This document shows, in pieces, positions 4,704 through 21,864 of a stretch of 64,000 nt of DNA (the stretch's first letter is position 1; every line of letters starts with the position of its first letter). Position numbers and translations under genes: made by a program. The stretch lies in IMG/VR virus record IMGVR_UViG_3300028840_001395, positions 1 to 64,000 of that record. One strand, written 5' to 3'. The notes below the pieces were generated by a model. It did not search any database and had not been told where the DNA came from. It saw only the letters and a list, made by a program, of their open reading frames with translations.

Positions 4704-6335
4704 CTACTCGGCGGAGCCCTTGACGCCGAAGACGCTGCTCACGTCCGGCTCGGAGTCCCAGAGCTGCGACAGCTCGTTGACCTCGTTGCCCCCGGCGGGG
4801 GCGGGCTGGACGTGCCCGACCTTGGCGACGCCCTTGGACGCCTTCTTGGGCTGCGGGCGCTGGGTGGCCTTCTTCTTGCCGCCCTCCTTCTCGTCCTTGT
4901 CCTTGGCCTCTTCCTCGTCCTCTTCCTGGATGGTCTCGGCGGCCTCTTCCTCGGCCTCCTCCTCATCCTCCTTCTTCTCTTCCTCGTCCTCGGACTTCTT
5001 GGACGCGACGCGCTCGATGTCGCCGCCGAAGATGTCCATCAGGAGCGAGTCGTCCTCGGTGATGACCGAGTCCTCGGTGGCCAGGCCCATCGGGTCGCCC
5101 TGCATCGAGAACATGTCGGCCTCGACGCTGGACTCCTTGTCGGAGTCCTCATCGGCCTCCTCGTCCTGGTCGTCGTCGCCGTTGTCGTCGCCGTTGTCGT
5201 CGTCCTCGTCATCCTCGGACTTCTTCTTGGCGGCCTCCTTGTCGGAGCTGTCGTCGTCCTCGTCATCCTCGGACTTCTTGGCGGACATGATCTCCATGCC
5301 CTCCTCGATCATCTCCTCCATGCCCTCGACGCCATCGTCCTCGTCCATCATCTCGGCCAGCATGGCGGCCTCGTCCGGATCGAGGTCGGTGTAGAGGTCA
5401 TCGACCATCACGTCCTGGGCGTAGAAGGAAGCGACCACCTCATCGCGGGCGATGATGCCGTCACCGTCGGTGTCGAGGCTGGCGAACACGGCCTTGCTTC
5501 CGCGCCACTCGTCCTGGCTGACGAAGCCATCGTTGTCCGTGTCGAACTGGTCGAACATCACGGCGATGGGGTTGTCCGGGCTGGCGGTGTGCTCGTCCTT
5601 CGCGGTCGCGGCACCCTCGGCACGCTCCTGCTCCTCGGTCTGGGGCTTGGGAGCGAGGGTGTCACCCTTGGGGTCGTTCTGGTCGGCGTTCTTGAGACCC
5701 TTCACCTCGGCGGTGAGGGCTTCGAGCTTCGCCATCACGGACTCGGCGGAGTACTTGGGGCCGCAGGCCATCTCGACGTCCTCCTCGACCTCGACCTCCT
5801 CGTCGTCCTCGGCCAGAAGCGCATCGACCATCTCGTCCTCGACCATGACCTCATCGTCCAGCATCAGGTCATCCTGGGCGAGGAAGCCGCCACCGAGGCG
5901 CTCCAGGGTCTTGTTGAGCTGCTCGTCGGGCATGTCCATGTAGTCGAGGGCCTGGTCCTCGACCATCTCGGTCGAAGCCTCCTTGCCCAGCGTGTGGCGG
6001 GCGAGGCGGATGCACTTGTCGGCCTTCTTGACGACCTGGGCGCGGAGGCTCTTGGCCGACTTCGGCAGGCGCGGCTGACGCTTGTGCGCCGGGTGATCCT
6101 GATCCTCGACATCGTAGCCAGGGTCTGCCGGAGGGTTGCCGTCCGGATAGGGCGGCGGATGGACATCCTCGGCCCACGAGGACGTGTCACCGTTCTCGTA
6201 CTGGCTGGCCTCGGGGTCCTCCTGGGTGTGCGCCGGGTGGCCCTGATCCTCTGTCCCGTAGCCAGGGGTTGCGGGCGGAGCAGACGCCTTGCGATCTGTC
6301 GCCTGCCGCCTCGTCATGCGGTTACGCTTGCTCAT
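4704..6335 (-). CDS. Acidic scaffold-like head protein with EF-hand pair
   Basis: Between protease and capsid genes; very D/E-rich; DTDNDGFVSQDE and DTDGDGIIARDE canonical EF loops. Confidence 0.65.
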   Translation of the reverse strand: MSKRNRMTRRQATDRKASAPPATPGYGTEDQGHPAHTQEDPEASQYENGDTSSWAEDVHPPPYPDGNPPADPGYDVEDQDHPAHKRQPRLPKSAKSLRAQVVKKADKCIRLARHTLGKEASTEMVEDQALDYMDMPDEQLNKTLERLGGGFLAQDDLMLDDEVMVEDEMVDALLAEDDEEVEVEEDVEMACGPKYSAESVMAKLEALTAEVKGLKNADQNDPKGDTLAPKPQTEEQERAEGAATAKDEHTASPDNPIAVMFDQFDTDNDGFVSQDEWRGSKAVFASLDTDGDGIIARDEVVASFYAQDVMVDDLYTDLDPDEAAMLAEMMDEDDGVEGMEEMIEEGMEIMSAKKSEDDEDDDSSDKEAAKKKSEDDEDDDNGDDNGDDDQDEEADEDSDKESSVEADMFSMQGDPMGLATEDSVITEDDSLLMDIFGGDIERVASKKSEDEEEKKEDEEEAEEEAAETIQEEDEEEAKDKDEKEGGKKKATQRPQPKKASKGVAKVGHVQPAPAGGNEVNELSQLWDSEPDVSSVFGVKGSAE

Positions 6336-7950
6336 GGTCTCCTCCTTGAGCTTCCCTTGACCCTCCCGAGGCCCTTCCCCTGGAGAGCAACTTGCTTAGA
6401 CGAAGAATAGTCTTGGATTCAGAAAGCGACGGCTCACGACCCATCGCGGTCGCACAGGCGCTCCTGAAATCCTCGACGGTGCGGTACTTGGTGTGGCGGC
6501 CAACTTCGAGGGCCACCCTGTAGATCGGAACGGGCACCTGGATGCCCGCACGAGCGTTGAACGAAGCCACGGCCTCCAGAAGCTCCACATCAGACCTCGC
6601 GGTCTTGGCCAGAGCATCCAGGCCAGCCAGGTAAGCCCGGCGGATTCTGGTGTTGGCCTCCTTGACCACGTTGTCATTGGGGGCCATCGAGGAATCTTCC
6701 AGGGCTTCGTCCACCGTGTCCTGGCGGAGCTTGTCCTTGATACGGGTCTTCACCCGGTCGAGAACGAACTGCTCCAGCTCCTGCTCGACATCTTCGAGCG
6801 GGGCCTTCGGTTCCTCCGCCTCGTCACCACCCTCATCTTCACCACCCTCGTCCTCGTCCATCCAGCCCGAGAGGAAGCCGTTGGCCTGGATCGGGTCGGT
6901 GATGGTGAACTTCTGACGGGCGGGGGTCTCGAACGTGGTTGAGATGATATCGGCACCCTTGGATGCCTGGCTGGCAAGCTGGGCGTCGCTCTGGGCCACT
7001 CGATCAGGAATGACAGCATCCGAGAATCGAGTGGGGACGACGCCTTCGGCCAGGTTGGCAGCCTTGAGCTGAGCGTCCGGCGACCACTCGGGCGGCGGAC
7101 TGGCCAGAACCTTGGCTGCCCGGCTGGTGATCTCCGGCGTCGGCTCCAAGATGTTTCGCATGACCGCGCCCGTGAAGGCCGGGACACCGACCCAGGAACC
7201 CTCCACGAACATCACGCCGCCCGTGGGGTCGAGATCCTGGTGCCCACACAGCTCCGCGATGAGGTGGCGTCCGCCCTGCTCATCGAAGAAGGTGTTGCCC
7301 TTCATATACTTGATATGAGGGCACATCTCGGTTTCGTCGGCTGCCCAGTGACCACACTTGGTGCAGATGGTGCCATCGACGGTGCAGCCCATTGACAGGG
7401 TGCCCATCTTGCCGTTCTCGATGGCCTTGATCAGCTCGGTGTGCTTGCGGTCGGTGGCGATGAGGATATCCACGTAGATCGAGTCCCCGATGTCGCGTGC
7501 GACGGCATCGATGATGCGACCCTTGGACAGCTCCTCGACCTGGACGTGCTCCACGAAGTTGTGGGCACCCACGAACGTCGGGTACGCCTTGGCCAGAACA
7601 TCACGGTTCCAGGCGTCCTTGTTGTTGTTGATGTACTTCTGGGTGCCCGGCGTGATGCGGAAATCCGGGTAGCGCAGATCCACCTTGAACCCATCCACGA
7701 CCTGGGAGCCCCTCTTGGTTCCCGGCGGAGTCACCGAGTCCACGGAGGCGATGATGGTGGCGTGGGTCAGGAGGAAGTCCTTGGGGCTGAAGGGCTTGGA
7801 GAAGAACTCGGAAGCCCGCTCGATGAGGTTGTCCTTCAACCCCTCTGCGGCGATCTTGGTGCCCTTCCCGGCGACCCGGATGTTCGCCCACTGGGTCTTG
7901 CTCACCGAAGGGTGAACCAGATGGGCGTCAGCGGTCTTGGGCATCGCCAT
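6322..7950 (-). CDS. Prohead maturation protease (HK97/assemblin-like) with Zn-binding insert
   Basis: NFVEH, GRIIDA, LSMGC, CTKCG..CPH, FVEGSWVGVPAF motifs; ATG at 7950 overlaps upstream stop. Confidence 0.8.
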   Translation of the reverse strand: MAMPKTADAHLVHPSVSKTQWANIRVAGKGTKIAAEGLKDNLIERASEFFSKPFSPKDFLLTHATIIASVDSVTPPGTKRGSQVVDGFKVDLRYPDFRITPGTQKYINNNKDAWNRDVLAKAYPTFVGAHNFVEHVQVEELSKGRIIDAVARDIGDSIYVDILIATDRKHTELIKAIENGKMGTLSMGCTVDGTICTKCGHWAADETEMCPHIKYMKGNTFFDEQGGRHLIAELCGHQDLDPTGGVMFVEGSWVGVPAFTGAVMRNILEPTPEITSRAAKVLASPPPEWSPDAQLKAANLAEGVVPTRFSDAVIPDRVAQSDAQLASQASKGADIISTTFETPARQKFTITDPIQANGFLSGWMDEDEGGEDEGGDEAEEPKAPLEDVEQELEQFVLDRVKTRIKDKLRQDTVDEALEDSSMAPNDNVVKEANTRIRRAYLAGLDALAKTARSDVELLEAVASFNARAGIQVPVPIYRVALEVGRHTKYRTVEDFRSACATAMGREPSLSESKTILRLSKLLSRGRASGGSREAQGGDHEQA

Positions 7951-8549
7951 CAGAGCGCCTCCAGCAGATCGGGGTCGGGCTGGAACTCCACGTAGGACGG
8001 ATCTCCCAGAATGTCCTCCCGCTTGATGAGGAACAGGCAGTTCCCGCATCCCAGCAGGGGGACACTCTGTCCGCTGCGCCGCTTGTAGATGGCCTTCCTC
8101 AGTGCCTCCTGCTTGCACTTGGGGCACAGGTAGCTGCCGGAGTCCAACTCCCCCTGCGTCGCCTTGTACTGCCGGTCGGCAGAAGCCCAGTAGATGGCCT
8201 TCTTGACGAAGGCTCGGGCCACCCGCTCACGGGTGTTGTGGTCAGACGAAGTGTGGGGGAGCTTGTCGGGGCCACCAGGGACATCCACCGTACCTGCTCC
8301 ACCGGGGATGTTGTCGTCCCCGACCTCGGGGGGCTGGTAGTCCTTGGACTCATACCGCTGGAGATCCTCGACAGCCATACGGGCGGAACCTGTGGAGAAC
8401 TCCACATCCACCATGCCGATTGCAGGCCAGACGGCCTGCACTCTCCCGCTCTGGGCCGCGTGCTCCAGGATGGGATACACGATGTCCCCGACCTGGAACT
8501 CCTTGGCCCGGCGCTGGTAATCGACGTATGCCTGCTTGGTCTTCGGCAC
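7950..8549 (-). CDS. Hypothetical virion protein, SH3-like N-terminus plus C4 zinc ribbon
   Basis: FQVGDIV..GRVQAVW; CPKC...CGNC; carries RERVARAFVKKA motif. Confidence 0.7.
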   Translation of the reverse strand: MPKTKQAYVDYQRRAKEFQVGDIVYPILEHAAQSGRVQAVWPAIGMVDVEFSTGSARMAVEDLQRYESKDYQPPEVGDDNIPGGAGTVDVPGGPDKLPHTSSDHNTRERVARAFVKKAIYWASADRQYKATQGELDSGSYLCPKCKQEALRKAIYKRRSGQSVPLLGCGNCLFLIKREDILGDPSYVEFQPDPDLLEAL

Positions 8550-8567: not shown

Positions 8568-9269
8568 CTACGCGGTCAGGACGTAGCCGTGGGAGGCCTT
8601 CTTCTCCTTGGCCTCCTCTTCCTTCTCTTCCTGCATGGACTTGGCGGCCTCCTCCTCGGAGTCGTCGGCGGCCTTCTTCTTGCCGCCTTCCTTCTCGTCG
8701 CCGTCGTCCTTGTCCTTGGCCTCTTCCTTCTTCTTCTCGATGTTCTTCAGGAACTCGGGAGGAAGATCCTTCTTGGCCTGGCGAACGACGGTCGCGGCGA
8801 GGTTGAGCGCCTTCTCGACCTGGGCTGCGGCCTCCTTGGGGAGGTCACCCTCACCGATGGCGGCAGCGAGGCCACCGAGGGCAGCCTGGACGCCGGGGCG
8901 CGGGGCCTGGGGATCGGTCGTGATGCGGTCGGGGCCGATCTCGCCGCCCTGCTGCTTCTCGCGCAGCTCGCGGTTCTCCTGCTGCGAGAACTCGCCCTTC
9001 ATGTAGGCCTCATCCGGCTCGTCCTCCAAGGGACCGGCCTTCTCACGCCCGATGTCGTCGGGGTCGAAGCCCTGCTCCTTGACGACATCATCGCCGGTCA
9101 GTGCGACCTTCTCCAGATGATCGGAGAGCATGTCACACCGCAGCGAGAAATCGTGAGCGATCCGCTTCTCGACCCCGAGGGTCTGGAAGTCCACCTCGAA
9201 CAGGTTGGCGAGCCGATCCAGGTCCGCTGTCACGGCCTGTGCGCCCTTCTTGGTCAGCTTCTGGGTCAT
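8568..9269 (-). CDS. Hypothetical head-associated protein with charged C-terminal tail
   Basis: AGGAGG RBS before ATG 9269 (MTQKLTKK); late motif upstream; tail shared with the scaffold-like protein. Confidence 0.75.
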   Translation of the reverse strand: MTQKLTKKGAQAVTADLDRLANLFEVDFQTLGVEKRIAHDFSLRCDMLSDHLEKVALTGDDVVKEQGFDPDDIGREKAGPLEDEPDEAYMKGEFSQQENRELREKQQGGEIGPDRITTDPQAPRPGVQAALGGLAAAIGEGDLPKEAAAQVEKALNLAATVVRQAKKDLPPEFLKNIEKKKEEAKDKDDGDEKEGGKKKAADDSEEEAAKSMQEEKEEEAKEKKASHGYVLTA

Positions 9270-12200
9270 CGTCTGGTTCCTCCTCCGAGTTCCATCCGTG
9301 GAAGCTCTGCTTGGGCACACACTTGCCCTTCGCTTATAAGGTTCCACGTATAGAAAGAAGATTGAAAAACTTTGGGCGAAGATGCGAAACTTTGAGCCTC
9401 TTTGCCCTGCGACTTGTACTTCTTGTCGAGATTCCCGATGTCCTGTTCCTCGACCGTATCTCGAATTTGTGCCCCCGTCAGAGAGTCCGGAGCAGGTTCA
9501 CCTATGATCTCACGGGCAATATCCTGGGCAATCTCGACCTGCTGGACACGAGCCTTGTTCGAGACTTCGTTGCACTTATTGATCTTTTCCGGGTCACCCT
9601 CGGCATCTGCCAGGCACTTCATCAGCTCCTTCTGGATCTGGGCGAACCGCTTATCGTTCCGCAGCGCCCCCTGGGCCGACTTGACCTTTTCGTCAACCTC
9701 ATCCTGGTCGTCGGTGCCATTCTCCCCCTTCCGGGCCGTCTCGGTCAGGAAAGCGTGGATCGTGGTCATCCCGTCCAAGTGGAGGTCTTTCAGCATATCG
9801 GTCAGAACCTTGGCGGACTGCTTGTCCTCGTCCTCATCCGAGGAAGCCTTCTCCTTGATCACCTTGATCATGTCCTTGTAGGGGCCGTTTTCACCCCCTA
9901 CCAAGGAGTACAGCTCATCGTCGGACACCTCTGACATCACCCCCTGTACAAGTTCCCGGCCAGCCGGGCTGTGGAACTCATCCGTGGACATCCCGACGAG
10001 CTTCATCGCCTCGCCCTTCTTGTGAAGGGCCTTGACCAGGGCCTTCATCTCATCGGCGGGTTCCTCCCGGAGGGGGGATATCTTCTCGTCGTTGACCAGG
10101 GCGGCCATCGCCAGGCCATTGGCGATGTTCTGTAGCTCCGCGAACTTGTTCTCATCATCCGTATCTTCGAGCAGCTTCTCCATCTGGGCGATGGCAGCCC
10201 CTCGAAGTTCGGGGGTCATCTTGGAGTACTCCTGGAACGCCTGCTCGGTACGCTGGCGGAGAGCATCCGCGTCCTTGGGCTGGTCGTTGACCTTGGTGCC
10301 TCCAACCAGGGTGGGGTTGGAAACAACCTTCCTGGCCAGCGTCTTGGCAGCGAGGGCCTTGGCGCTGTCCCGGAGGTTCATCCCCTGGCCGAAAGTGTCC
10401 TTCTTCAGCGCCTTGGTGGCCTCTGCGATGGTCTTGTCGGAGAGAGCGTCCCCAGAGAACACGCCCGTCTTGAGCTTCTCAAGCTCATCGGCGTAGGCCA
10501 TGAGGATGGCCCGCTTGTCCTCGTCGCTCTCGACACCCTTGAGTTCCGCCGCGAAGTTGGTATCCCCGACCTGGCGGGCCACGTTGTCGATCTTGTCGAT
10601 GTCCGCCTGGAGCTTCTTCTTCTCGGCCTCGGCCTTCCGCTGCTCAGCCTCTTCCTCAAGGCGCTGCGCCTTCTGGGCGAGGGTTTCTTCCTCAACCTCG
10701 GTCTTCTCATCGGGTGTCAGAGGCTCTCCCTTGGCCTTCTCGGCATCAGAGAGAGCCTTGGACTTCTCAGCCAGGCTGAGACTGACTTCCTCATCCCCCT
10801 TGCCCTTTTCGGCATTCCTCTCATCTGCATCGTCAGGATCGAGCTTGCCCGCAGCCATCGCAGCGGCATTCGCCTCATTCTTGGCGTGGCTATACTCGCC
10901 ATCGGGGAGTCGGAGCCCCCACTCGCCGTTCTCCTTCTGCCAGTAGTCGCCGGGCTTCTTATCCTTGCTGTCCTCGGGAACCTTCCCGGCCAGCCGGTCG
11001 AGCCAGCGCATGGCAACCCGCTTGTAGTTGAGGGAGAGATCCTCGTCTGTGTCCGCCGTGCCGCCCTCGGTGTCCTCATCCCCCATGTCCACCCGCTTCT
11101 TCTTCAGATCCTTGCGGGGTGGCTTGAACTTCGGAGCGGGCTTGACGAGATCCTCGACAGCCTCATCTTCCTTCTCGGCGTGGGTCTTGGTGGCGCGGCG
11201 CGTCATGTAGGTGTGGCCCGGACCCTTGCCCGTCTCCACGAAGCCTCGCTGCTTGAGCATCCTCACGGCATGGGGATTCACGGCATCGAGGCAGAACTTG
11301 ATGTCTGGGAACGGATCGGTCAGGTCATCGTAGTTGCTGATGGCGATGTCCATCAGCTTGCTGCCCAACGCCTTGCGCTGCCAGGCGGGGTCCACCACGA
11401 TGTCGAACTCGTAGCACTCCCGGTCACCAGAATCCGACGAGTCGAACAGAGCTGCCACAAGCTGTCCGTCAACCTCGTATCCGGCTACCCAGTCCTGGTG
11501 AGACAGGACACGGATGCCTACCCGCTGTGCGAGATCCCACGGGTCGGAGCCACGAGGGATGCGCCAGACGAGCTTCGGGGATCCTGCGGTGAGGATGTCC
11601 TCGAACTCCTGGCGGTAGCGGTCGATGATCTCGATGACCTCTGCGAAGCCACCCCCTGCAGCCTGCTTGTCCAGCTTGGTCTTGACCTGGCCCGTCGCCA
11701 GGAAGGTGTCTTCGAGGCCCGGAACGAGATACTGGCTCTTGAGGGTCGAAGGCTCGTGGCCGACCTCCTTGGCGGTCTCTTCCAGAGCCTTCTTGAACTC
11801 CTCCTTGAACTTCTTCTCGCGTTCCTTCTTGTCGTCCGGGGCTGGGTTGCCCTTGTTCCGGATGGCCTTGAGCTTGTTCTGCATCACCCGGTTGGCGTGC
11901 AGCCCCCGGATGTCCTTGGCCGTGATATCCATCGGCTTGAGGTAGTCGTTGACCGTGGTGGAATCGACCTTCACGTCGTCCACCTCGAACACCGGATCGG
12001 TGCCGGACTTGTCCTTGACGGCCTCCCGCAAGACCCGGACGATATCCGGGTCACGGGTCTCCTTCTTCTGGCTCACCCCGGACTTGCCGACGTACTTGAT
12101 CGTGGCCTTGTCCTTACCCACCGTGACGTGCTTGGCCTGCCAGCCGGTGACACCGAAGTGACCTTCCTTGGCCGAGTCGGGGTTGCCCACGCGCTCGTAG

Positions 12201-15200
12201 GTGTCATTGATGAGACCCACAGCCAACGCCGTGAGACGGGTCTTGAGGTCGTCAGAGGACAGATCCTTCTTGACCTTCTTCTGGAGGTCACCGAGCTTCC
12301 CACGGAGCTTCTCGACCCGCTTGGCCTTCTCCCGGTTCCGATGCTGAACCTGGCCTTCCGAATACTCGTAGACTGTGGTGGTGCCCTTGCCGTCCGCCTT
12401 GGGCACTTCCTTCTTCTTCTGGTACTTGGCGGCTACTCGCTCCGCCGGAGTCGCGTTCGGGTGAAGCTCCCGCCACCGCTCGTAGGGAGTCACATTGTCG
12501 CAGTCCGTGGACTCCTCACCGTAGGGGGACTCGATCTCGATGTCCCCGACGCACTCATCGGTCGTCTCCAGAACCTCGGCCCAGACGTACTCGGGCTCGC
12601 CGGTCATCGGCCCGAACACGGCACGCTCACCTTCCTCGAAGGCTTCGCCGTCAGCGGCCATGCGGGAGGCGAAGCGGTCAGCCACGTTCTCGACCAGCGG
12701 GGCGTCGCTGATGAGGAGAGGCACCGAATCCTCGGGGATGACCCAAGAGCCGATCTCCTTGCCATCCTCATCATCGAGTTTCAACTCGGTGTACTTGACG
12801 TTAGCTGCAGCCCGCTTCTTGCGAGGTCTCTTACGGGGTTTCTTGCGGGGCTTCGGCTTGGGCTTGTCCTCGTCGCCTCCGCTTCCCCAGATGCGCTCGA
12901 AGTCCTCCAGATGCTCTTCGGGCAGCTTCTTCATCACGGCCAGCGCAGAGGCATCGCAGAAGTGCTCCTGGGGATGGGTCGATGAGTAGGGCGTCGGGTA
13001 GTTCTTGTTCGCCCGTGCTGACCGGAGCAGCACCTTGCGGATCTCATGAATGGGGATGGGGAGCACCCTGTCCTGGTTCGGAACCTGGAACCAGTAGTTT
13101 TGGTCGTCCATCTTCTCCACGAAGAACGGCCCCTTGATGCGGCGCATCCTGATGGGAAGCTCATCACCCACACCCGGCATCTCGATCTCGGGGGTCTTCT
13201 GACCCACCCGGATGTGGTGCATCTCCCACTCACGCTGGGCCTTCTTGTCCCCGAACTTCTGCCACCACCGATGCGACAATTCGTGGATGATGTTGTGAAC
13301 CACATCCATGTTGAACCGGGCGAAAGGCCGGATATACATGTCGTCCCGCTTGCCGTTGTACCAGGCCATTGTCTTGGCTTGCTGTAGCTGCGGGACGATG
13401 AACACGTCGCCGTAGAGGGTCTTCTTCAGAGTCGCCGGAACCTTGGCTGCCCGGATGAGCTTCGCGGCCTTGTTGATCGTCTTCTTGACGTTCTCCAGCT
13501 TCTTGCCCGTCAACCCCATCGTGTTGTGAACCATGAACGGGCCGAGCTTGAACTTCTCCTCCGTCCCCTCCACCTTGTCGCGCCAGTGCTGGGTCGCGTT
13601 GAGGAAGTCGATGTGCCGCTGGGTCTTCTCCATCCACGGCCCGAACTTGATCGGCATCCGGCGGGCGGACATGAAGTGCCGGGCCGCCAATTCCAGACCC
13701 TTGTGCTTCTTCGCTGGGACGTGCTTCAGGTCGAGCACGCCTTGGGCCACATTCCGGCCATGAACGACGAGCCAACCCCAGGGATTCTTGAGTTGCCTCT
13801 TGATATGGCGATTCTGGAGGGCCTCGGGAGGCACCTGGCGAAGAACGTCTTTCAGGGCCTTCCAGAGTCCCATCAACTCCTGATAGGAATTGGCCAGGTC
13901 TGCGGGGGTTGTGAGCGTCGCCTGCTTCTGGTATCGGAGGGCTACCCGCTCGGCAGATGCCTGCTTCTCCTCGGGCCACGGCTCGGGAGCCGGGCGGATC
14001 TTGAACAGCTTGAGTTCCTTGTTCTGCTTCCGGCCCTTGGGGTAGGGCTCGACCGTGACCACCACATCGCCTTTCGAGTCGGTCTTGAAGCCCTTGATCT
14101 TGCCCTTCTTGTTCTTGTACTTGCCGTAGAGAACCGAGTCTCCGATGTTCAGCTTGAATGTGGCTGCGATCTTCCCACCCTGCACCTCCGAGGGCACCTG
14201 GTAGTAGACGATATCGTCCTCATCGCGCACGTTCAGCCGGTGCGGGGTCTTCTTGAGCATCGAGACCCCCTTCTCGAAGGGAATCATCTTGGCGTTCTTC
14301 AGCACCACATCCCTGTTCCAGACCACCTCCTCGGGATACCCATACTTGGGCACCGTGGGAGTCTGGAACGTGATGGCAACGAGCTTCTCGCCCATCTCGG
14401 GCTTGATGTGCGTGGTCTGCACTCTGGGAACGAAGTGCCCCCAGCGGGACGACACGGCGGTCACGTTGTCCGTCCCGAACTTCTTGTATGGGGGCCTCAT
14501 CTTGAGCTTGCCGTCAGCCAGAATCAGGCGTGCCCGGCGGTTGGTCGTGAAGTGGACGAACGCATCGTCCTTCACGTCCATCAGGTAGTGGGTGTGCTGG
14601 TCTTGAATCGGCGTTCCCAGCCACACCATCCACTCGGGATGAGCCTCGGGAGCCCCTCGGAGGGCCATCTTCGTTCGCCCCCACTCACTGGCATCATCGA
14701 ACATCACAATGAACTCAGGCTGACCGCGAAGTGCCCCCGTGCGCCCCCCGCCCAGCGCCTGACGCACCTTCTTCTCCAGACGACGTGGATTGGCAGCCAG
14801 CACAGGGTCAATCAGGAGAGCCTGGCGGGCGGCCTCGGTGATCTTCTGGAACTCCTTGCCCGTCAGTCCGAACTCCGAAGCGAGTGCCCTCATGTCCATG
14901 ACCTTGCCCGGCTGGGCCAGGACAGCAACGAAGGCATCGGACTCATCGGCGCTCATCTGGACGGTGATCTCGCGGACACGCTGCCGCTGCCGGGCATCGA
15001 GGAACCCCAAACGCTTCCCGGTGGGCATACCCAAGTCCATCAGGTCGAACAAGGTCGCCAGGTCAGCCTTCTTCTCGGCCCAGTTGCCCAGTGCCGAGGC
15101 GAAGCCCTTGTCCTTGCGGGCGATGTCCTTGACCACATCGAGGAGACCCAGGCGCTTCATCTCCAGCAGGGCCTTCTTGCCCACTCCGCCCTCATAGAAC

Positions 15201-16693
15201 GTGTCGATGATCATGTTCGACAGGTGGGACGGCGGGACGTTCTGGAGCTTCTGCCTGTTCCGCTTGATGGAGGCTTCCACGTCCGGGGCGATCTTCAGGC
15301 CATACTTGAGCAAGAACTTGATGGCCCTCACCATCCGGCTCGGGTCGTCCGCGAACACCTTGTCAGGGTTCTGGGGGCACCGGGCAACGCCCTCCTGCAA
15401 GTCCCGCAGGCCACACCCCGTCAGGTCGATGATCTCGGCCTTGTCCGGCCCCTTGGCCAGGTCGAGCAGCCTCCACATCAGCGTGTTGAACGTGAACTCC
15501 CGACGAATCACGTCCTCCTCGATGGTCGAGGGCTCGACCATGTGGGGCTTGTAGCCCTTCCCGGCCTGACCGCCGTAGCTCTCCTTGCGGGCGTTGGCGA
15601 TCTCGATGACCTCACCGTCGAGGTTGGCCCCTCCGACCTCCCAGTCGCCCTTGATGGTCAGGATGGCCACGCCGTAGTTGTTCGTGGTCAGATTGGTCGG
15701 GACAGGAATCGCCCTCTGGAGCTTCTTGGCGAACCACTCCGAATCACGACCAGCCGCGATGGAGTCAATCACCACGTCGATGTCCTTGATAGGCTGGTTG
15801 ATCACGAAGTTGCGGACGGCTCCACCCACGACGTAGGTGTCCTTGGCGACCCCGAGCTTCCGGGCCACGTCCGAGAGGAACTTCATCAGCGCCCGGCTGG
15901 CCTGGTCGGTCATCTCGGACAGGTGTGTCGAAGCCACTCGATTGGCAGTGGCACTGCCAAAAGGAATGGTCTGGAGCTTCGGGAGCCCCCAGACCTCGAT
16001 GTTATCGAACTCCCAGTCGCCTTGGGGCACATCGCCCTTGTAGACCGCCGTGAGGCCGTCCAGGTAGGCCAGAGTGACGTGGGGGCGGTAGATGAGCGGG
16101 AACTTGTCGTCCACCCGAAGGCCTGCGTCAATGAGCTTGTCGCGGAGCTTCCAGCGAATCCCGGCCATGTCGTGACTGTAGCGGATGCCCATCAGGGCGA
16201 CCCTGCGGCCCTTGTCGGGATGGACGAAGTATTCGGGGCCTTGGAGATGGGCTCGAACGGGCTCCCGGATCTCCGCGAAAGCCTCCCGCGAAGCGTTGAG
16301 GAACGCTTCTTCCTGGTCTGCCGGGACGTTCCCGACGTAGAGGAATGTGGCGTGGGGCTTGGACTTGTCCTCGTCGCCCAGCGGGGGGAACTGGCCTGCA
16401 AGCTCCTTCGGGACAGGGATGAAGAATCCGACCCCGGTGCGGTCGCCGGTCTTCTTGCCGTCCTGGGAGTCGGCCTTCTTCTTCGGCTTTGCCGGATCCT
16501 CGCCGTACTTCTTGCCGACCTGGCCGCCCTCGACCTCGCGGTGCTTGACGATATCGCCCTCGTGCTCCTTGCTCCAGGACTTCCAGTGCTTGTCGCAGAA
16601 CCAGGCCCGGCCCCGGCCCTCGGCCCAGACACACTCATGGGTCGGGGGCTTGCTGCATTCCATGCACTTCGACATGGAATGGCGGCCAGCCAT
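9266..16693 (-). CDS. Giant polyvalent virion-associated protein: Zn finger, 2H phosphoesterase, CCA/poly(A) nucleotidyltransferase, ART-like, SH3-like, zincin, topoisomerase IB, GNAT, helical tail
   Basis: PHATF/PHVTL (2H); GGAVRN..KDID, RREFTFN, DDPSR (class II NTase); HFTT...I..G.L; HELSH..QEHF; YERVGN, GKSG, KDIRG, GH...QY (TopIB); VVDPAWQRKALGSKL (GNAT). Start chosen at ATG 16693 with GGAG. Confidence 0.85.
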   Translation of the reverse strand: MAGRHSMSKCMECSKPPTHECVWAEGRGRAWFCDKHWKSWSKEHEGDIVKHREVEGGQVGKKYGEDPAKPKKKADSQDGKKTGDRTGVGFFIPVPKELAGQFPPLGDEDKSKPHATFLYVGNVPADQEEAFLNASREAFAEIREPVRAHLQGPEYFVHPDKGRRVALMGIRYSHDMAGIRWKLRDKLIDAGLRVDDKFPLIYRPHVTLAYLDGLTAVYKGDVPQGDWEFDNIEVWGLPKLQTIPFGSATANRVASTHLSEMTDQASRALMKFLSDVARKLGVAKDTYVVGGAVRNFVINQPIKDIDVVIDSIAAGRDSEWFAKKLQRAIPVPTNLTTNNYGVAILTIKGDWEVGGANLDGEVIEIANARKESYGGQAGKGYKPHMVEPSTIEEDVIRREFTFNTLMWRLLDLAKGPDKAEIIDLTGCGLRDLQEGVARCPQNPDKVFADDPSRMVRAIKFLLKYGLKIAPDVEASIKRNRQKLQNVPPSHLSNMIIDTFYEGGVGKKALLEMKRLGLLDVVKDIARKDKGFASALGNWAEKKADLATLFDLMDLGMPTGKRLGFLDARQRQRVREITVQMSADESDAFVAVLAQPGKVMDMRALASEFGLTGKEFQKITEAARQALLIDPVLAANPRRLEKKVRQALGGGRTGALRGQPEFIVMFDDASEWGRTKMALRGAPEAHPEWMVWLGTPIQDQHTHYLMDVKDDAFVHFTTNRRARLILADGKLKMRPPYKKFGTDNVTAVSSRWGHFVPRVQTTHIKPEMGEKLVAITFQTPTVPKYGYPEEVVWNRDVVLKNAKMIPFEKGVSMLKKTPHRLNVRDEDDIVYYQVPSEVQGGKIAATFKLNIGDSVLYGKYKNKKGKIKGFKTDSKGDVVVTVEPYPKGRKQNKELKLFKIRPAPEPWPEEKQASAERVALRYQKQATLTTPADLANSYQELMGLWKALKDVLRQVPPEALQNRHIKRQLKNPWGWLVVHGRNVAQGVLDLKHVPAKKHKGLELAARHFMSARRMPIKFGPWMEKTQRHIDFLNATQHWRDKVEGTEEKFKLGPFMVHNTMGLTGKKLENVKKTINKAAKLIRAAKVPATLKKTLYGDVFIVPQLQQAKTMAWYNGKRDDMYIRPFARFNMDVVHNIIHELSHRWWQKFGDKKAQREWEMHHIRVGQKTPEIEMPGVGDELPIRMRRIKGPFFVEKMDDQNYWFQVPNQDRVLPIPIHEIRKVLLRSARANKNYPTPYSSTHPQEHFCDASALAVMKKLPEEHLEDFERIWGSGGDEDKPKPKPRKKPRKRPRKKRAAANVKYTELKLDDEDGKEIGSWVIPEDSVPLLISDAPLVENVADRFASRMAADGEAFEEGERAVFGPMTGEPEYVWAEVLETTDECVGDIEIESPYGEESTDCDNVTPYERWRELHPNATPAERVAAKYQKKKEVPKADGKGTTTVYEYSEGQVQHRNREKAKRVEKLRGKLGDLQKKVKKDLSSDDLKTRLTALAVGLINDTYERVGNPDSAKEGHFGVTGWQAKHVTVGKDKATIKYVGKSGVSQKKETRDPDIVRVLREAVKDKSGTDPVFEVDDVKVDSTTVNDYLKPMDITAKDIRGLHANRVMQNKLKAIRNKGNPAPDDKKEREKKFKEEFKKALEETAKEVGHEPSTLKSQYLVPGLEDTFLATGQVKTKLDKQAAGGGFAEVIEIIDRYRQEFEDILTAGSPKLVWRIPRGSDPWDLAQRVGIRVLSHQDWVAGYEVDGQLVAALFDSSDSGDRECYEFDIVVDPAWQRKALGSKLMDIAISNYDDLTDPFPDIKFCLDAVNPHAVRMLKQRGFVETGKGPGHTYMTRRATKTHAEKEDEAVEDLVKPAPKFKPPRKDLKKKRVDMGDEDTEGGTADTDEDLSLNYKRVAMRWLDRLAGKVPEDSKDKKPGDYWQKENGEWGLRLPDGEYSHAKNEANAAAMAAGKLDPDDADERNAEKGKGDEEVSLSLAEKSKALSDAEKAKGEPLTPDEKTEVEEETLAQKAQRLEEEAEQRKAEAEKKKLQADIDKIDNVARQVGDTNFAAELKGVESDEDKRAILMAYADELEKLKTGVFSGDALSDKTIAEATKALKKDTFGQGMNLRDSAKALAAKTLARKVVSNPTLVGGTKVNDQPKDADALRQRTEQAFQEYSKMTPELRGAAIAQMEKLLEDTDDENKFAELQNIANGLAMAALVNDEKISPLREEPADEMKALVKALHKKGEAMKLVGMSTDEFHSPAGRELVQGVMSEVSDDELYSLVGGENGPYKDMIKVIKEKASSDEDEDKQSAKVLTDMLKDLHLDGMTTIHAFLTETARKGENGTDDQDEVDEKVKSAQGALRNDKRFAQIQKELMKCLADAEGDPEKINKCNEVSNKARVQQVEIAQDIAREIIGEPAPDSLTGAQIRDTVEEQDIGNLDKKYKSQGKEAQSFASSPKVFQSSFYTWNLISEGQVCAQAELPRMELGGGTRR
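9350..9365 (-). promoter_or_regulatory. Putative late promoter TCAAT-N7-CTAT
   Basis: Minus strand tcaatcttctttctat, ~80 bp upstream of the 9269 start, inside the 3' end of the giant ORF. Confidence 0.6.
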
Positions 16694-16694
16694 C

Positions 16695-17666
16695 CTAGCT
16701 CCAGGAAACGACTTCAAGGGGCATCCCTTCCCAGACTCGACCCTCATAGAGCCTCATCAGCTTGTCCAGGAACCACTCGTGGGATGCCGGATCCCACGGG
16801 GCATTCCCATCCGCACCGGGCCAATCCGGATTCTGGACAGCGAACTGACCCTCCCGTGCCCCGCCTCGCCCCAGCGTTCGGGGGAGCATGTAGATGCTGT
16901 ACCCCTCGTCCTGGGCGATATCCTTCAGATATCGGTATAGATACGGAGCTTCCGGGCTGTCCCTGAAAGCTCCCTCGATGACGATAGGGACTCCGGGAGG
17001 CACGTCATCCTGCACGTTGATGGTGATGGAACCCTCTGGAACACGGGCCTTGATATACTTGGAGGCCACACGCCTCGATGTCCGCATCTGGAGGATCTTC
17101 CCCGCGTCCTCCTGGGCAAAGTGCCACATGGACTGGACGGTGGAGGCAAACGCCGAGTATAGCTCCTCGGCTGACCTCTCCTGCCCATGACAGGTGACAT
17201 CCGGGTCGTCACAGTGCCGGGCGTTCCGGTAGTCCAGATACATCTGGGCCAGCTCGTCCCGCTTCGCTTTCGGAAGGGCCATGAGGGACTTCATCGGGAC
17301 GCCCAGGATCTTGACCGCCTCATCCACCCACTCGTTCTTGGGCCAGCACACGGGGTTCTTGTCCTCGACACACCTGAAAACGAACTCGAAGACCGCCCGA
17401 AGCTCCTCGGGTTGAGCGGGCCGACCCCAGACGTAGCGGTAGGACTGATCGATGTCCGCCAGGACATCTCCCATCATGTCGGCAGGGCCATCCCCGTTGT
17501 ATAGCTCGGTGCCGTCGTATCTGCCGGGCGGCTCGACATGAGCACCAGGTTCGCCCGGCTGGATAGTCCACCAGCCCGCTGTCCGCTCCAAGTGCGCGAG
17601 AACCTTACGCATCTGGCTTCGGGCTGCGACTTTCTGGGACAGGATCTGGCGCACGCGGGCCTCCAT
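16695..17666 (-). CDS. Hypothetical virion protein (modular)
   Basis: Late motif upstream; QKVAAR and RRVASKYIKA motifs. Confidence 0.7.
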   Translation of the reverse strand: MEARVRQILSQKVAARSQMRKVLAHLERTAGWWTIQPGEPGAHVEPPGRYDGTELYNGDGPADMMGDVLADIDQSYRYVWGRPAQPEELRAVFEFVFRCVEDKNPVCWPKNEWVDEAVKILGVPMKSLMALPKAKRDELAQMYLDYRNARHCDDPDVTCHGQERSAEELYSAFASTVQSMWHFAQEDAGKILQMRTSRRVASKYIKARVPEGSITINVQDDVPPGVPIVIEGAFRDSPEAPYLYRYLKDIAQDEGYSIYMLPRTLGRGGAREGQFAVQNPDWPGADGNAPWDPASHEWFLDKLMRLYEGRVWEGMPLEVVSWS

Positions 17667-17697: not shown

Positions 17698-17713
17698 ATA
17701 GGACTAGAAACGA
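17698..17713 (-). promoter_or_regulatory. Putative late promoter variant (TCGTT-N7-CTAT)
   Basis: Same spacing as the other copies; overlaps portal stop codon. Confidence 0.45.
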
Positions 17714-19401
17714 CCGCCCTCTTCCTCCGGCTTCTCGTACTTGAGCCCGAGGTTCTCGGCAATCTTCTCCGCAGCGTCCGAATTCTCGGCCAGAGCGTCG
17801 CCCGTCCGGCTGTAGATGCCACGGAGAGCCTCGTTGAACGTCGCGTCCTTGAGGGTGAACAGGTCGCGCTTGAGCTTCTCGTCCACCGTGTCCGGGTCGA
17901 GGTTGAGCAGGTCGAGGATGGTGTCGATGTCCAGCGACCCCTTCTGGTAGAGGTTGAACAGGGCATCGAACGTATCGCTGTTGTCCCGCAGAGCCAGGCG
18001 AGTGAACGAGAGCCGGGGGACGATGACTTCCAGATTCCCGTCCTCGTCCTCCTCCACGAAGCCCATTCGGCGGCACATCGGCTTGAAGAAGCCGTCCTCC
18101 ACCAGGTCTTGGAACAGCTCCCGCATGAGCATGTAGCGGGTGTTGATGACTTCCAGGTGAATCCGGTCGCCCGAGTAGGACGACTCGCCCGACAGAAGGC
18201 TCTCGGTCACGCCCAGGCCCGCATACATCTGCCGGTCGGTGAAGTCCCAGACCCACGACCAGTCGGGAAGCCGCTGGTCTGCTCCCATCTCTTCCCAGTT
18301 GACCTGGAAGTTGGTGATGATGGAGTAATCCGGGTCTTGCAGAGCGAGATCGACCTGCTCCCGAAGCTCCTCGGTCTGTTCCTCGTTCATGTCCTCGGCG
18401 TAGACGAGCCGGTAGGGCGTCATGTGCCGGGAAGCGATGGACGTGAGGCTCTGACGCACCTTGTCACGGAATACCAGCGTCCTCATGCACCGCTGGAGGA
18501 TGCTCTGACCCCGATCCTCGTAGTCCGCCCGCTTCCGCTGGAGGCAGTAGAGGTAGGAGCCCGCGTCAGGGTCCATGTTCAGCGGGATGTTCTCCCCCGC
18601 CTTGATGGACGCCACAACGCCCTCGGGCATCGAGTTGACGATACGGATGGCCTGAGCATCACCCTGCTCGGCCTTCTCGATGATGTTCTTCGTCTTGCTG
18701 TCGGGGATGAGTTCGACCAGCTTCTCATCGGTGAACGGGAAGCTCTCCATGTGGATCTGCTCGGGAGGGAGCACACGGATGGCCGTCCAGCCCTTGTAGT
18801 TCTTCTTCAGCCAGGCAACCTCGCGCTCATCGGCATCCTCGTAGACCTGCCACTTCTCGACGGTCTCGCCCTCGGCGGTGATCTCTCGGATGCACTCCTC
18901 ACGGATCTCGCGGGGCATCTCCGGCGACGTGTCCTCGCAGAAGATGTTGGCCTCGCCCAGCAGGTTGTAGTCGTGGCTGATGCTGATGAGCCGGTGCAGC
19001 AACTTGATGTTCTTCGCCCACCGCTCACAGAACCGCAGGGCCTTCTTCCCTAGCTCCTTGTCCTTGCACTTGGGCGGGGCCAGCCGGAGCTTCGACAGCG
19101 GCAACTCAGTGTGAAGATCGACCGCCTGACCGACGAAGGGCTCGTACTTGTAGAAGAATCGGTAGAAGTTCCGCTGCTCATCGATGCTCTGGGGAAGCTC
19201 AAGGAAGTCCGTGGACAGCTCGGGCGAATACCAGTTGCCGCCCATTCCCAAGACGGTCTGGCCACCGGCACCCCAGACCGAAGCGTTCTTCATCTTCATG
19301 GCGGAGGTGACAATCTTGCTGGGCTTGCCAACCGTGACGTTGCCCCTGACGGGCTTCATCTCTGCCACCTTGATGGTGTGCTCTGGGTCGTTCTTCGTCA
19401 T
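17704..19401 (-). CDS. Portal protein
   Basis: 565 aa downstream of TerL; RFFY..EPFV.QAVD.HTELPLS, RGQSILQR, GLGV...LLSGE.SYS patterns typical of large-phage portals. Confidence 0.8.
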   Translation of the reverse strand: MTKNDPEHTIKVAEMKPVRGNVTVGKPSKIVTSAMKMKNASVWGAGGQTVLGMGGNWYSPELSTDFLELPQSIDEQRNFYRFFYKYEPFVGQAVDLHTELPLSKLRLAPPKCKDKELGKKALRFCERWAKNIKLLHRLISISHDYNLLGEANIFCEDTSPEMPREIREECIREITAEGETVEKWQVYEDADEREVAWLKKNYKGWTAIRVLPPEQIHMESFPFTDEKLVELIPDSKTKNIIEKAEQGDAQAIRIVNSMPEGVVASIKAGENIPLNMDPDAGSYLYCLQRKRADYEDRGQSILQRCMRTLVFRDKVRQSLTSIASRHMTPYRLVYAEDMNEEQTEELREQVDLALQDPDYSIITNFQVNWEEMGADQRLPDWSWVWDFTDRQMYAGLGVTESLLSGESSYSGDRIHLEVINTRYMLMRELFQDLVEDGFFKPMCRRMGFVEEDEDGNLEVIVPRLSFTRLALRDNSDTFDALFNLYQKGSLDIDTILDLLNLDPDTVDEKLKRDLFTLKDATFNEALRGIYSRTGDALAENSDAAEKIAENLGLKYEKPEEEGGRF

Positions 19402-19736: not shown

Positions 19737-19990
19737 TTCGGCCCCCACTTGTGCTTCTTGGTCATCTGGCCCTTCTCGTAGGCGGCCTTGAGCACCTTCT
19801 TGAGCTTCCGGATATCGGTGGGGGAGCCCTTGAAAACCCGCTCCCACGACCCTCCGGCTCGCACAAACACGTCGGAGATCAAGCTGAACTCCTCCGGCAC
19901 GTATTCTACCTTACCCTCCAAGGTCGAAACTGTCAGCTTCTTGATGAACCGATGGTCGGCCCGAACAGGGCTACGGGGGTCAATGTCCAT
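19733..19990 (-). CDS. Hypothetical protein
   Basis: Translationally coupled to TerL. Confidence 0.65.
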   Translation of the reverse strand: MDIDPRSPVRADHRFIKKLTVSTLEGKVEYVPEEFSLISDVFVRAGGSWERVFKGSPTDIRKLKKVLKAAYEKGQMTKKHKWGPK

Positions 19991-21864
19991 CAGCGCCTCC
20001 CCCGAATCCGACCATGTGCGATGGGGGACCTCTGCCGATCTGGACTCGTGCCCAGCTTACGGGCGTTCAGCCGGGCCTTTCTCATGGCCGACTGCATCTG
20101 CTTCTGTCCTCGGATAGCCCCGGAGCGACCTCCCGTGTGGACACCCGTGATGTAGCGAGTGTTGCCGAGATTCTTGCTGGCGAGCCAAACCATACGGACG
20201 ATTGCGTCCGAACGGTCATCATGCTTTCCATCCACGTTGGGCGCAGCCACGGTGGTCACGTACTTGGAGTGATACTGGGCCTGCAGCTCCAGCATCTCCT
20301 GGATATAGTCGCAATGTTGCTTCCCGGCATCCTGTGGGATGGGCCAGTCATACAAGACCAGCCGCTTGTCCCACATCATGTCCTTGAAGTTGCGGAAGAT
20401 CTCGCTGGTCAGGTTCTTCGTGAAGTGCTCAGACCGAAGCTGCTTGAGGCCCTTCTTTGCCAGTGCCTGCTCGAACGCGATGCCGGACCACTGATCGAAC
20501 AACCCCTCGGTCATGTAGAAGCGCCGGGAGTAGTTGAACACCCACTGGGCGACCTCATCGAAGTCCAGCCGGTCCACGTTCTCGTAGTCGCCCTCCCCGG
20601 CCTTGATCTGCTCCACCAGGTCGAGGACAATCTTGGCCTCCCCGTCAATCATCTCGATGTGGCCGATGGCGATGGCCGATGCGTCACCCACCAGGCCCAG
20701 GTCGATGCCGACGAAGTGGGGTCGCTTGGCCGGAGCCTGGGTCATCGGACGGTGGCTCGGGTCCACACACTCGATGAGGTCTGACTCTCGCTCGATCCAG
20801 CCCTTCGTCCGGTCGGAGAACTCGCCCCCGAACTCGGTGAAGAACACCACCGGGTCTTTGACGTACTTGCTCTCAAAGTAGCTGCGGGGGATGGTCGGGT
20901 TGACCTCCCAAGACGGTGCTTGGATTGCCAGCATGTCCTGTGAAGCCCGGCCCCCGGCCATCGCCATCTGGTAGAGCTTGTAGAACTGCCCCTGACGGCC
21001 CAGCGGGGACGAGATGGAGAGGATACGACCCTCGACGCCTCCGATGGGGACGGTCGAGTCGTTGGGGTCTTTCTGGGAGAAGGTCGCGGTCGAGGGCGTA
21101 ATGGCGTCGTACACCGCCTGGGCCGACGACTGCTGGGTGCCGTCCGTGAAGTGGGCAAGCTCATCCAAGATGATGATCATGTTGCCCGGACCACGAAGTC
21201 CCTTGGCGATGCAAGAGCGGAAGCTCACCCGAAGAGAAGCCCGTGCTCCAGGGTTGTCGCAGTAGCGACCCGAGTGGTCGATGTCCGCCGGGGTCTGGAA
21301 CCGGGCGTAGGTCTGGGTGTTGTTCGCCGTGTAGGGGGAGAAGAAACCGCACTCGCTGAAGTAGGCCGACACGTCCCGATACAGGATGCCCGCCTGATCC
21401 TTGTCGGTAGCAACGGAGATGATGCCGATCTCCTTGCCAGGCGGGATTCCGTAGTAGCCCTGTGGGTCACCCTTCAGAAGGAGCTTGTAGGTCTCATAGG
21501 CACCCACGGCAGCGGCCAGGTAGGTCTTGCCGGAACGGCGACCGATGACAAGGACAAGCTCGGGACGGTCGTGATCGACCTCCTTGATGTTGCTCCGGCC
21601 CTCGTTGAACAGGTACTCCAGATACTCGCGCTCGGTGAAGTGCCAGTAGCCCGAAAGCTGCCAGTCCTTCGCCACCTTGAACCGCTTCCTGTCATCCAGT
21701 TCGATGCCGTAGTGGGCCTTGAGGATCACGCGCTGGACGGGGAACAGGTGGAGATTGACACCCCACCGAGACTCGCAGAACTCGATGATATTGGCGATCT
21801 GGGAAGTCGCACCCTTGACCGTCTGGCCGACGTTCAGGGCGATGTCAGAAAGCCCGCTCCCCAT
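19990..21864 (-). CDS. terL: Terminase large subunit
   Basis: Walker A GRRSGKT, Walker B IIILDELAHF, ISSP coupling motif, RNase H-like GIDLG and HDDRSDA. Confidence 0.92.
   Translation of the reverse strand: MGSGLSDIALNVGQTVKGATSQIANIIEFCESRWGVNLHLFPVQRVILKAHYGIELDDRKRFKVAKDWQLSGYWHFTEREYLEYLFNEGRSNIKEVDHDRPELVLVIGRRSGKTYLAAAVGAYETYKLLLKGDPQGYYGIPPGKEIGIISVATDKDQAGILYRDVSAYFSECGFFSPYTANNTQTYARFQTPADIDHSGRYCDNPGARASLRVSFRSCIAKGLRGPGNMIIILDELAHFTDGTQQSSAQAVYDAITPSTATFSQKDPNDSTVPIGGVEGRILSISSPLGRQGQFYKLYQMAMAGGRASQDMLAIQAPSWEVNPTIPRSYFESKYVKDPVVFFTEFGGEFSDRTKGWIERESDLIECVDPSHRPMTQAPAKRPHFVGIDLGLVGDASAIAIGHIEMIDGEAKIVLDLVEQIKAGEGDYENVDRLDFDEVAQWVFNYSRRFYMTEGLFDQWSGIAFEQALAKKGLKQLRSEHFTKNLTSEIFRNFKDMMWDKRLVLYDWPIPQDAGKQHCDYIQEMLELQAQYHSKYVTTVAAPNVDGKHDDRSDAIVRMVWLASKNLGNTRYITGVHTGGRSGAIRGQKQMQSAMRKARLNARKLGTSPDRQRSPIAHGRIRGRR

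Follow-up and report, generated by a model that had tools for sequence, protein, structure and literature searches.

Type IB topoisomerases (TopIBs) require neither ATP nor Mg2+ or another divalent metal, and the poxvirus enzyme is packaged in the virion and aids early transcription. The bacterial and poxvirus TopIBs are enzymes of 310–350 amino acids (aa); to our knowledge, TopIBs are scarce in bacteria and have hardly been studied in phages. Here we describe a TopIB domain from the first 64 kb (64,000 nucleotides, hereafter the window) of IMG/VR virus record IMGVR_UViG_3300028840_001395, a 435,804-bp uncultured phage record with 62% GC. In contrast to the bacterial and poxvirus enzymes, this domain appears to lack most of the N-terminal clamp and is embedded in a 2,493-aa polyvalent multi-enzyme protein, which is encoded by a single uninterrupted open reading frame (ORF; 9266–16747) on the minus strand, the strand of all protein modules and head genes described below. 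Coordinates are those of the window unless genome positions are stated. The database gene call starts 24 codons later, at 16675, which gives a protein of 2,469 aa and abolishes the overlap with the upstream ORF.

Stand-alone “phage-specific” topoisomerases I are present in the cultured jumbo phages phiRSL1, PaBG, Lu11, Motura, and NCTB (PMC7824862). Like the present domain, these are TopIB-type enzymes of very large phages, but they are solo proteins and are discussed under replication and recombination; that jumbo-phage survey, by the authors of the polyvalent-protein survey, mentions TopIB in stand-alone form only and in a few cultured phages (PMC7824862). A tblastn search of 50,697 phage records with this domain (E ≤ 1e-3) matched none of these enzymes, and we therefore assign it to a distinct huge-phage subfamily of TopIBs with a shortened N-terminal domain. 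The so-called polyvalent proteins (Iyer et al. 2017), such as P1 DarB and the MuF fusions, are characterized by recurrent fusion, fission, and swapping of domains beside packaging genes (PMC5512222). Those encoded next to portal–terminase genes were predicted to be loaded into the capsid and injected along with the DNA, and most of their domains were regarded as weapons against host processes (PMC5512222). The giant protein and its relatives share with the polyvalent catalogue the 2H, GNAT, Pol-beta-type nucleotidyltransferase, ART, and InPase domains, the giant multi-enzyme chain, the shuffled partners, and the portal–terminase adjacency (PMC5512222). By contrast, no MuF, MPTase, or LPD family is recognized here by Pfam, and TopIB is fixed in its slot. 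The text of the survey does not give TopIB as a polyvalent domain, the word “topoisomerase” occurring in a reference title only (PMC5512222), and we found no description of a capsid-associated phage TopIB in the literature searched, the coverage of which was incomplete. TopIB as a fixed polyvalent module thus appears to be new within the polyvalent theme, whereas the enzyme itself belongs to a known family. The T4 internal proteins and Alt, which are targeted to the capsid and injected, would by hypothesis be alike in being pre-made head-borne enzymes, and a recurring short terminal peptide is a further likeness; they have no sequence relationship to the proteins described here.

The segment 11657–12460 (aa 1430–1697 of the giant protein) encodes a TopIB module composed of a β-hairpin and a complete catalytic domain, as assigned by Pfam, AlphaFold2, Foldseek, and VIA-align. 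Its limits, like the borders of the other modules of the giant protein, are the points at which homology to 120 large relatives starts and stops; these are the 120 listed of 208, and all domain counts among large relatives given below cover them. The Pfam model Topoisom_I (PF01028) matches aa 1468–1671 with an E-value of 3.2e-24 (86 bits; curated cut-off 23.7) and scores 91.3 bits at 11735–12346 in a six-frame search of the genome. The significant phmmer matches in the Protein Data Bank (PDB) are type IB topoisomerases only and span bacterial, archaeal, and poxvirus enzymes (Deinococcus radiodurans TopIB, 1.7e-8; 6z01, 1.2e-7; variola, 1.2e-6; Leishmania, 6e-5; vaccinia, 4.5e-4), with the identity to bacterial and poxvirus TopIBs being only 20–24%.

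The canonical order Arg-Lys-Arg-His/Asn with a Tyr nucleophile is present in this module: (i) catalytic Arg1519 (12191–12193) in ERVGN (aa 1518–1522) falls on R137 of D. radiodurans TopIB; (ii) catalytic Lys1555 (12083–12085) in GKSG (aa 1554–1557) falls on K174; (iii) Lys1611 and catalytic Arg1614 (11906–11917) in TAKDIR (KDIRG, aa 1611–1615) fall on K236 and R239; (iv) catalytic His1664 (11756–11758) in VGHE (aa 1662–1665) falls on N280 and on the histidine of the variola GH motif; and (v) the nucleophile Tyr1673 (11729–11731) in SQY (aa 1671–1673) falls on Y289. R1519, K1555, R1614, H1664, and Y1673 are invariant in all 36 aligned homologous domains, among them a 26%-identical TopIB paralogue from the same genome, and K1611 is kept in at least 90% of them. 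An initial annotation of this DNA had recognized an apparently full TopIB catalytic set in the motifs ERVGN, GKSG, KDIRG, GH, and SQY, bracketed by ERVAAKY and DKQAA. All five motifs lie in one minus-strand frame, that of the 2,493-aa ORF, which is far beyond chance; the brackets were found at aa 1436 and aa 1693, respectively; and the assignment is borne out by Pfam, by the invariance of the residues in 36 of 36 domains, and by the fold. The extent given in that annotation, 11690–12420, lies inside the module, but the homology block is slightly wider.

An AlphaFold2 model built on the 36-sequence alignment (mean pLDDT 89, pTM 0.81) has the same fold, the same R-K-R-H/N-Y order, and a similar catalytic-domain size as the TopIBs of D. 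radiodurans (PDB 2f4q/3m4a) and of poxviruses (variola, 2h7f; vaccinia, 1a41). In a Foldseek search of the PDB, the best 22 matches were all TopIBs, with E-values from 1e-11 to 4e-6. In VIA-align, human Top1 (1a36) and variola TopIB (2h7f) alike gave a Z-score of 22.4 with an rmsd of 3.9 Å over 238 aligned residues, and bacterial TopIBs gave Z-scores of 19.5–21, so that the comparison proposed in the initial annotation, with poxvirus (variola) and bacterial (Deinococcus) TopIBs included, yielded Z-scores of 19.5–22.4. The conserved module corresponds to variola residues 55–308, that is to say, of the N-terminal clamp domain it keeps only the last hairpin and appears to lack the greater part; the region upstream of TopIB (aa 1300–1430) is common to only 4–5 of the 120 relatives. 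In the sequence alignment, the hairpin tyrosines (VYEYS; YEY/YxY) align with variola Y70 and Y72, which we take to be DNA-contacting residues in the poxvirus enzyme. Since the catalytic set is intact and invariant and the fold matches, the domain is very probably enzymatically active.

Tyrosine recombinases share the catalytic fold and the Arg-Lys-Arg-His-Tyr chemistry with the TopIB domain, and the paralogue from the same genome has a sub-threshold Phage_integrase match, which would be compatible with the domain being a tyrosine recombinase or protelomerase, not a topoisomerase. However, Pfam assigns Topoisom_I to the giant protein, which has no Phage_integrase match; in Foldseek the tyrosine recombinases start at rank 23 (E ≥ 5.8e-3, TMq ≤ 0.38); and in VIA-align the best of them reaches a Z-score of 12.2 over about 170 residues, against 18–22 for TopIBs overall over about 238 residues. 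No protelomerase is among the 50 best structural matches listed by VIA-align. The better recombinase or protelomerase match that the initial annotation had said would overturn the assignment did not appear, and this identity, which is weaker than TopIB by Pfam, Foldseek, and VIA-align, is effectively refuted, its probability being negligible.

The giant TopIB protein belongs to the head-morphogenesis module and is encoded between the portal and prohead protease genes. The same-strand gene order is large terminase (19990–21864; phrog_2, 3.5e-22), portal protein (17704–19401; phrog_16240, 1.8e-28, with a weak Portal_Mu match), a 323-aa ORF (16695–17666), the giant ORF, two small conserved ORFs (8568–9347 and 7950–8549), the prohead maturation protease (6322–8127; phrog_18299, 2.8e-11), a very acidic, scaffold-like EF-hand protein (4704–6335), a 230-aa ORF (3782–4474), and the 291-aa major capsid protein (2891–3766; phrog_2522, 3.7e-50). 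In other phages, MuF/gp7-type head proteins are encoded in the slot of the giant ORF.

A megablast search of 50,697 phage records with the giant ORF gave no match. In metagenomic collections, 208 proteins of 1,371–4,363 aa carry this TopIB with 55–74% identity, on contigs of up to 530 kb. We examined 10 related loci, of which those named are L003–L006, L017, L018, L027, and L028, with L004 and L005 near-identical; in all 10, the TopIB protein is encoded just upstream of a conserved head-gene run ending in protease and capsid. In L003–L006, L017, and L018, tblastn with the head proteins of the window recovered the order TopIB protein, 2 small ORFs, protease, scaffold-like protein, 230-aa protein, and capsid protein; the called genes of L027 and L028 agree with this in order and size, and a 288–291-aa protein in them matches Phage_capsid_4. 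Portal and terminase genes lie upstream of the TopIB protein in L003, L006, and L018 and, by gene size, also in L027 and L028. No portal was found in the sequence covered at L004 and L005, and in L017 the upstream region is occupied by a second polyvalent gene and further ORFs, so that the portal does not directly precede the TopIB protein.

The partners of TopIB in these proteins vary widely. PolyA_pol occurs in about 50 of the 120 listed large relatives, and the other partner domains include DUF5661, ART-PolyVal, InPase, NUDIX, RNA ligase (PF09414), HAD_SAK_1, 2H, and GNAT, as well as PAP2, superoxide dismutase, carbonic anhydrase, ChaC, ParB, pyrophosphatase, and inteins. The relatives carry PF18760 (ART-PolyVal), PF18823 (InPase), and PF18796, the first 2 of which are Pfam families defined from polyvalent proteins. 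In the four loci compared (L003–L006), only TopIB and the segment equivalent to aa 1845–1919 are present throughout; the form in L003 has just 528 aa and consists of these 2 parts, and in L017 a 1,797-aa GNAT/2H protein abuts the TopIB protein, i.e., the chain is split into adjacent genes. In a clade of uncultured phages of 300–570 kb, TopIB is a constant component of the slot next to the portal gene, while its partner enzymes are swapped freely.

From the sequence and its context we infer enzymatic activity, packaging, injection, a DNA substrate, and the timing of action. The explanation that we favor as a whole, with a probability of about 0.55, is that an active TopIB module in a packaged polyvalent protein serves as a swivel for the incoming genome. 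The giant protein would be incorporated into the prohead and would exit the capsid with the DNA, a step that we hold to be moderately probable in view of the protein's conserved place in the head module, its architecture, and the domains that accompany TopIB. The TopIB would act through a 3'-phosphotyrosyl intermediate at Tyr1673, independently of ATP and metal, and because it needs neither it suits a role that begins no later than the start of phage gene expression. Together with pre-made counter-defense enzymes, the incoming 436-kb genome would thereby receive a swivel that is ready on arrival, works without cofactors, and relieves both positive and negative torsional stress while the DNA enters, is first transcribed, and is replicated. 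That the substrate is the phage's own DNA, relieved of torsional stress in these 3 processes, is a more tentative proposal, to which we give somewhat less than an even chance overall. The 2H and CCA-adding modules of the same chain look like pre-made tRNA repair against host nucleases that attack anticodons or CCA ends, and host proteins may be modification targets of the GNAT, a possibility raised for polyvalent proteins (PMC5512222). If the protein is packaged, these phages bring along enzymes for tRNA repair and protein modification and a DNA swivel that needs no cofactor. This would be the counterpart, in a bacterial virus, of the enzyme set in the poxvirus core, and it would bear on the torsional stress of huge genomes in packaging, ejection, and early expression.

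Several observations weigh against this reading. The C-terminal domain of the giant protein has no recognizable fold in the PDB, BFVD, or ESM Atlas; the giant protein has no recognizable capsid-anchoring domain of a known kind, MuF included, and no MuF was found in the whole genome; and no cultured relative emerged, the tblastn search with TopIB (E ≤ 1e-3) of the 50,697 phage records having retrieved one uncultured 485-kb phage. Pfam models, to which control genomes respond, detected no type IA or type II topoisomerase in the genome, so that its two TopIB domains are the only detectable topoisomerases, and for this reason TopIB may be the general replication and transcription swivel of the phage. 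No cellular-type RNA polymerase (RNA_pol_Rpb2_6, RNA_pol_Rpb1_2) was detected in the genome, where very divergent phage polymerases could escape these models; a search for T7-type RNA polymerase also detected none but had no positive control and is uninformative. Finally, in both of the huge-phage contigs checked, L025 and L026, the stand-alone TopIB of the same subfamily is encoded among small non-structural genes and not in a head module. In poxviruses TopIB is packaged with the virion RNA polymerase, and with no phage RNA polymerase detected here this pairing is not reproduced. The initial annotation had proposed a virion cargo that relaxes incoming phage DNA in analogy to the poxvirus enzyme. 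The cargo part is plausible from the conserved head-gene position and the polyvalent architecture, packaging being a reading of context only, whereas the poxvirus analogy is weakened by the undetected polymerase, by TopIB being the sole topoisomerase type detected, and by the stand-alone TopIBs outside head modules.

These observations could be accommodated if the giant protein were not cargo but a cytoplasmic multi-enzyme that serves, with the second TopIB, as a general swivel, its location among head genes reflecting late co-expression or history. The lack of any other detected topoisomerase family, the stand-alone subfamily members among non-structural genes of L025 and L026, and the lack of a MuF or known capsid-targeting domain all fit such a protein; in all 10 loci, however, the fused form is still encoded ahead of the genes from protease to capsid, although everything else in the protein has been extensively reshuffled, and its architecture and partner domains match the polyvalent class, so that we consider this alternative unlikely, though not strongly so. 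TopIB relaxes any duplex DNA without cofactors, and an injected TopIB could equally be a host-directed effector that relaxes or nicks the host chromosome and collapses its negative supercoiling, transcription, and replication. Polyvalent domains are indeed mostly host-directed weapons (PMC5512222), but nothing specific to the giant protein speaks for such an effector, and the 55–74% identity and the solo, housekeeping-like copies agree no less well with a function on the DNA of the phage itself; we regard it as distinctly improbable. The commonest partners of TopIB are RNA-repair domains (PolyA_pol in about 50 of the 120 relatives, and also 2H, RNA_ligase PF09414, and HAD_SAK_1). Poxvirus and eukaryotic TopIBs can cleave at ribonucleotides, leaving 2',3'-cyclic phosphates, and the TopIB site might accordingly act on RNA or ribonucleotide strands, with 2',3'-cyclic-phosphate and 5'-OH ends being made or resolved together with the 2H, CCA-adding, HAD, and RNA-ligase modules. 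Polyvalent domains are functionally heterogeneous, so that this association is weak evidence for RNA chemistry, and the DNA-contacting hairpin (YEY) and the full DNA-type catalytic set are conserved, which makes an RNA-directed role very improbable. The swivel activity assumed in the preferred reading, that of a packaged enzyme acting on the incoming genome, is accessible to biochemistry, the TopIB domain, of about 265 aa, being compact, strongly conserved, and readily assayed.

The ERVAAKY bracket proved to contain a copy of a recurrent peptide, RVAx[R/K][Y/W/F], which often takes the form A-x-RVAARY-L. The RVAAKY tag directly before the TopIB module (12422–12439, minus strand) is one of three copies in the giant protein (aa 934, 1437, and 1910). 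The copies in the window are at 12422–12439, 13931–13948, 11003–11020, 17055–17072, 25685–25702, 31296–31313, and 62476–62493; those in the genome beyond it are near positions 76467, 77258, 82536, 83967, 84014, 154232, 180421, 242764, 253291, 253902, 254172, 269229, and 431851. A six-frame translation of the genome contains 23 copies of the peptide, every one on the coding strand, and a rough gene set contains 16 against 0.44 expected by shuffling, an enrichment of about 35-fold. The copies differ in synonymous codons (four for Val and five for Arg are used), so that selection is for the peptide rather than for the DNA sequence. They are found at module junctions, roughly 12 residues ahead of the stop codon, or right at the N-terminal end of the protein (M-A-x-RVAxRY). 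Among the proteins that carry the peptide are both TopIB proteins, a HAD_SAK_1 RNA-repair phosphatase, and a CPD-like 2H protein. In the 120 large relatives the peptide occurs 141 times, and it forms the very N-terminus of most stand-alone TopIBs of the subfamily. The bare tripeptide RVA, a possible protease site, was counted 68 times against 46 expected, in genes called with a filter on third-codon-position GC content; the full six-residue tags account for the excess, and the RVA near-matches in head proteins are probably due to chance.

The spacing of the peptide (R0/R4, V1/Y5) fits an amphipathic helix, and a portable terminal helix on unrelated enzymes resembles a targeting or docking peptide, for which capsid loading may be one candidate function. 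By analogy with the T4 capsid-targeting sequences and the encapsulation peptides of encapsulins and microcompartments, the peptide could be a cargo-loading signal that steers enzymes, including both TopIBs and the related stand-alone TopIBs, into the prohead, with TopIB acting as a swivel in the capsid or at its exit; we consider this proposal quite unlikely. If it holds, TopIB would dissipate the twist generated by pumping in and expelling 436 kb of DNA, which would help to explain the packaging of very large genomes, and the peptide would be a handle for finding further cargo proteins.

The second TopIB protein of the genome (genome positions 81025–84036, minus strand; 1,003 aa) has the R/K/R/H/Y residues, a Thr at the K1611 equivalent, and two RVAARW tags. 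Its TopIB is fused to a C-terminal HExxH (HESQH) module that differs from the HExxH module of the giant protein and recurs in the polyvalent proteins of relatives. Its neighbors are a GroEL-like chaperonin, a tagged HAD_SAK_1 phosphatase, a 1,213-aa SNF2 helicase protein, and a 1,415-aa DUF2958 protein. Stand-alone TopIBs of the same subfamily are abundant, with 434 matches of 260–460 aa at 52–65% identity; that of L025 lies near RNase HII and methyltransferase genes, and that of L026 lies beside methyltransferase-like and histidine-phosphatase genes. A tree of 240 domains requires at least 13 switches between solo and fused forms, a number that is biased by the sampling of the top 120 per class.

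The giant ORF as a whole is a chain of about eight modules, of which TopIB is one; several unrelated catalytic domains (2H, CCA-adding/poly(A) polymerase nucleotidyltransferase, TopIB, and GNAT) are joined in it with at least 4 further modules. From the N-terminus, a LigT-like 2H phosphoesterase (aa 90–270; 15938–16480; TIGR02258) has both HxT motifs intact (H132 and H223), and its 2_5_RNA_ligase2 match (E 6.6e-6) is just under the cut-off. The class II CCA-adding/poly(A) polymerase nucleotidyltransferase (aa 270–670; 14738–15940) matches PolyA_pol (1.5e-15), phrog_2244 (2.8e-26), an NCBIfam model, and poly(A) polymerase and CCA-enzyme structures in the PDB, with E-values down to 3.9e-16. A segment without an assigned family (aa 720–850) is followed by a small KOW-like module (13928–14200; weak KOW match), which ends in the tag RVALRY (aa 934–939), and by a module with an HExxH motif (HELSH, aa 1160; 12878–13810), which is common to 23 of the 120 relatives. 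The HExxH module has no Pfam match and no PDB sequence match, and from its motif it is possibly a zincin-like peptidase. Downstream of TopIB are a GNAT acetyltransferase domain (aa 1753–1840; 11228–11491; Acetyltransf_1, E 1.4e-6, 29 bits, cut-off 20.7) and the short conserved module delimited by homology borders at aa 1845–1919 (10991–11215), which carries the tag RVAMRW and is connected to the C-terminal domain by an acidic linker. None of the signature domains MPTase, LPD, ART-PolyVal, InPase, and MuF was recognized by Pfam in the giant protein.

The C-terminal domain (aa 2080–2455, about 375 aa; 9383–10510) is all-alpha, with an AlphaFold2 pLDDT of 92.8, and occupies the C-terminus in 82 of the 120 large relatives, about two thirds. 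It gave no significant match in the Foldseek search of the PDB, in BFVD, in the ESM Atlas structure search, or in the atlas feature search, and VIA-align over 48,161 chains found generic helical matches with a best Z-score of 7.9. We regard the modeled domain as an orphan fold and a candidate anchoring domain.

Some observations on the head proteins and on the rest of the record were made in passing. The capsid protein is 87–90% identical in the 6 tblastn loci, against 40–65% for the neighboring head genes, which indicates an unusually strong constraint. The scaffold-like protein has 543 aa, is of low complexity, and contains a canonical EF-hand (E 2.6e-9); it shares the C-terminal motif EEAKDKD..EKEGGKKKA with the 259-aa protein encoded at 8568–9347, and both may be scaffold or internal proteins. 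The “direct terminal repeat” of the record is an exact 144-bp overlap between window positions 1–144 and genome positions 435661–435804, such as a circular or permuted assembly could give, and it is no marker of the physical ends. The pentanucleotide CCCTT, a candidate TopIB recognition site, is unremarkable, with 624 copies in the genome against 535 expected. At 55012–57855 and 52076–54421, the window encodes a ribonucleotide reductase with RNR_Alpha, B12-dependent-RNR insertion, and barrel domains, which adjoins a RecD2-type helicase and is interrupted by a LAGLIDADG-type (intein-like) insert.

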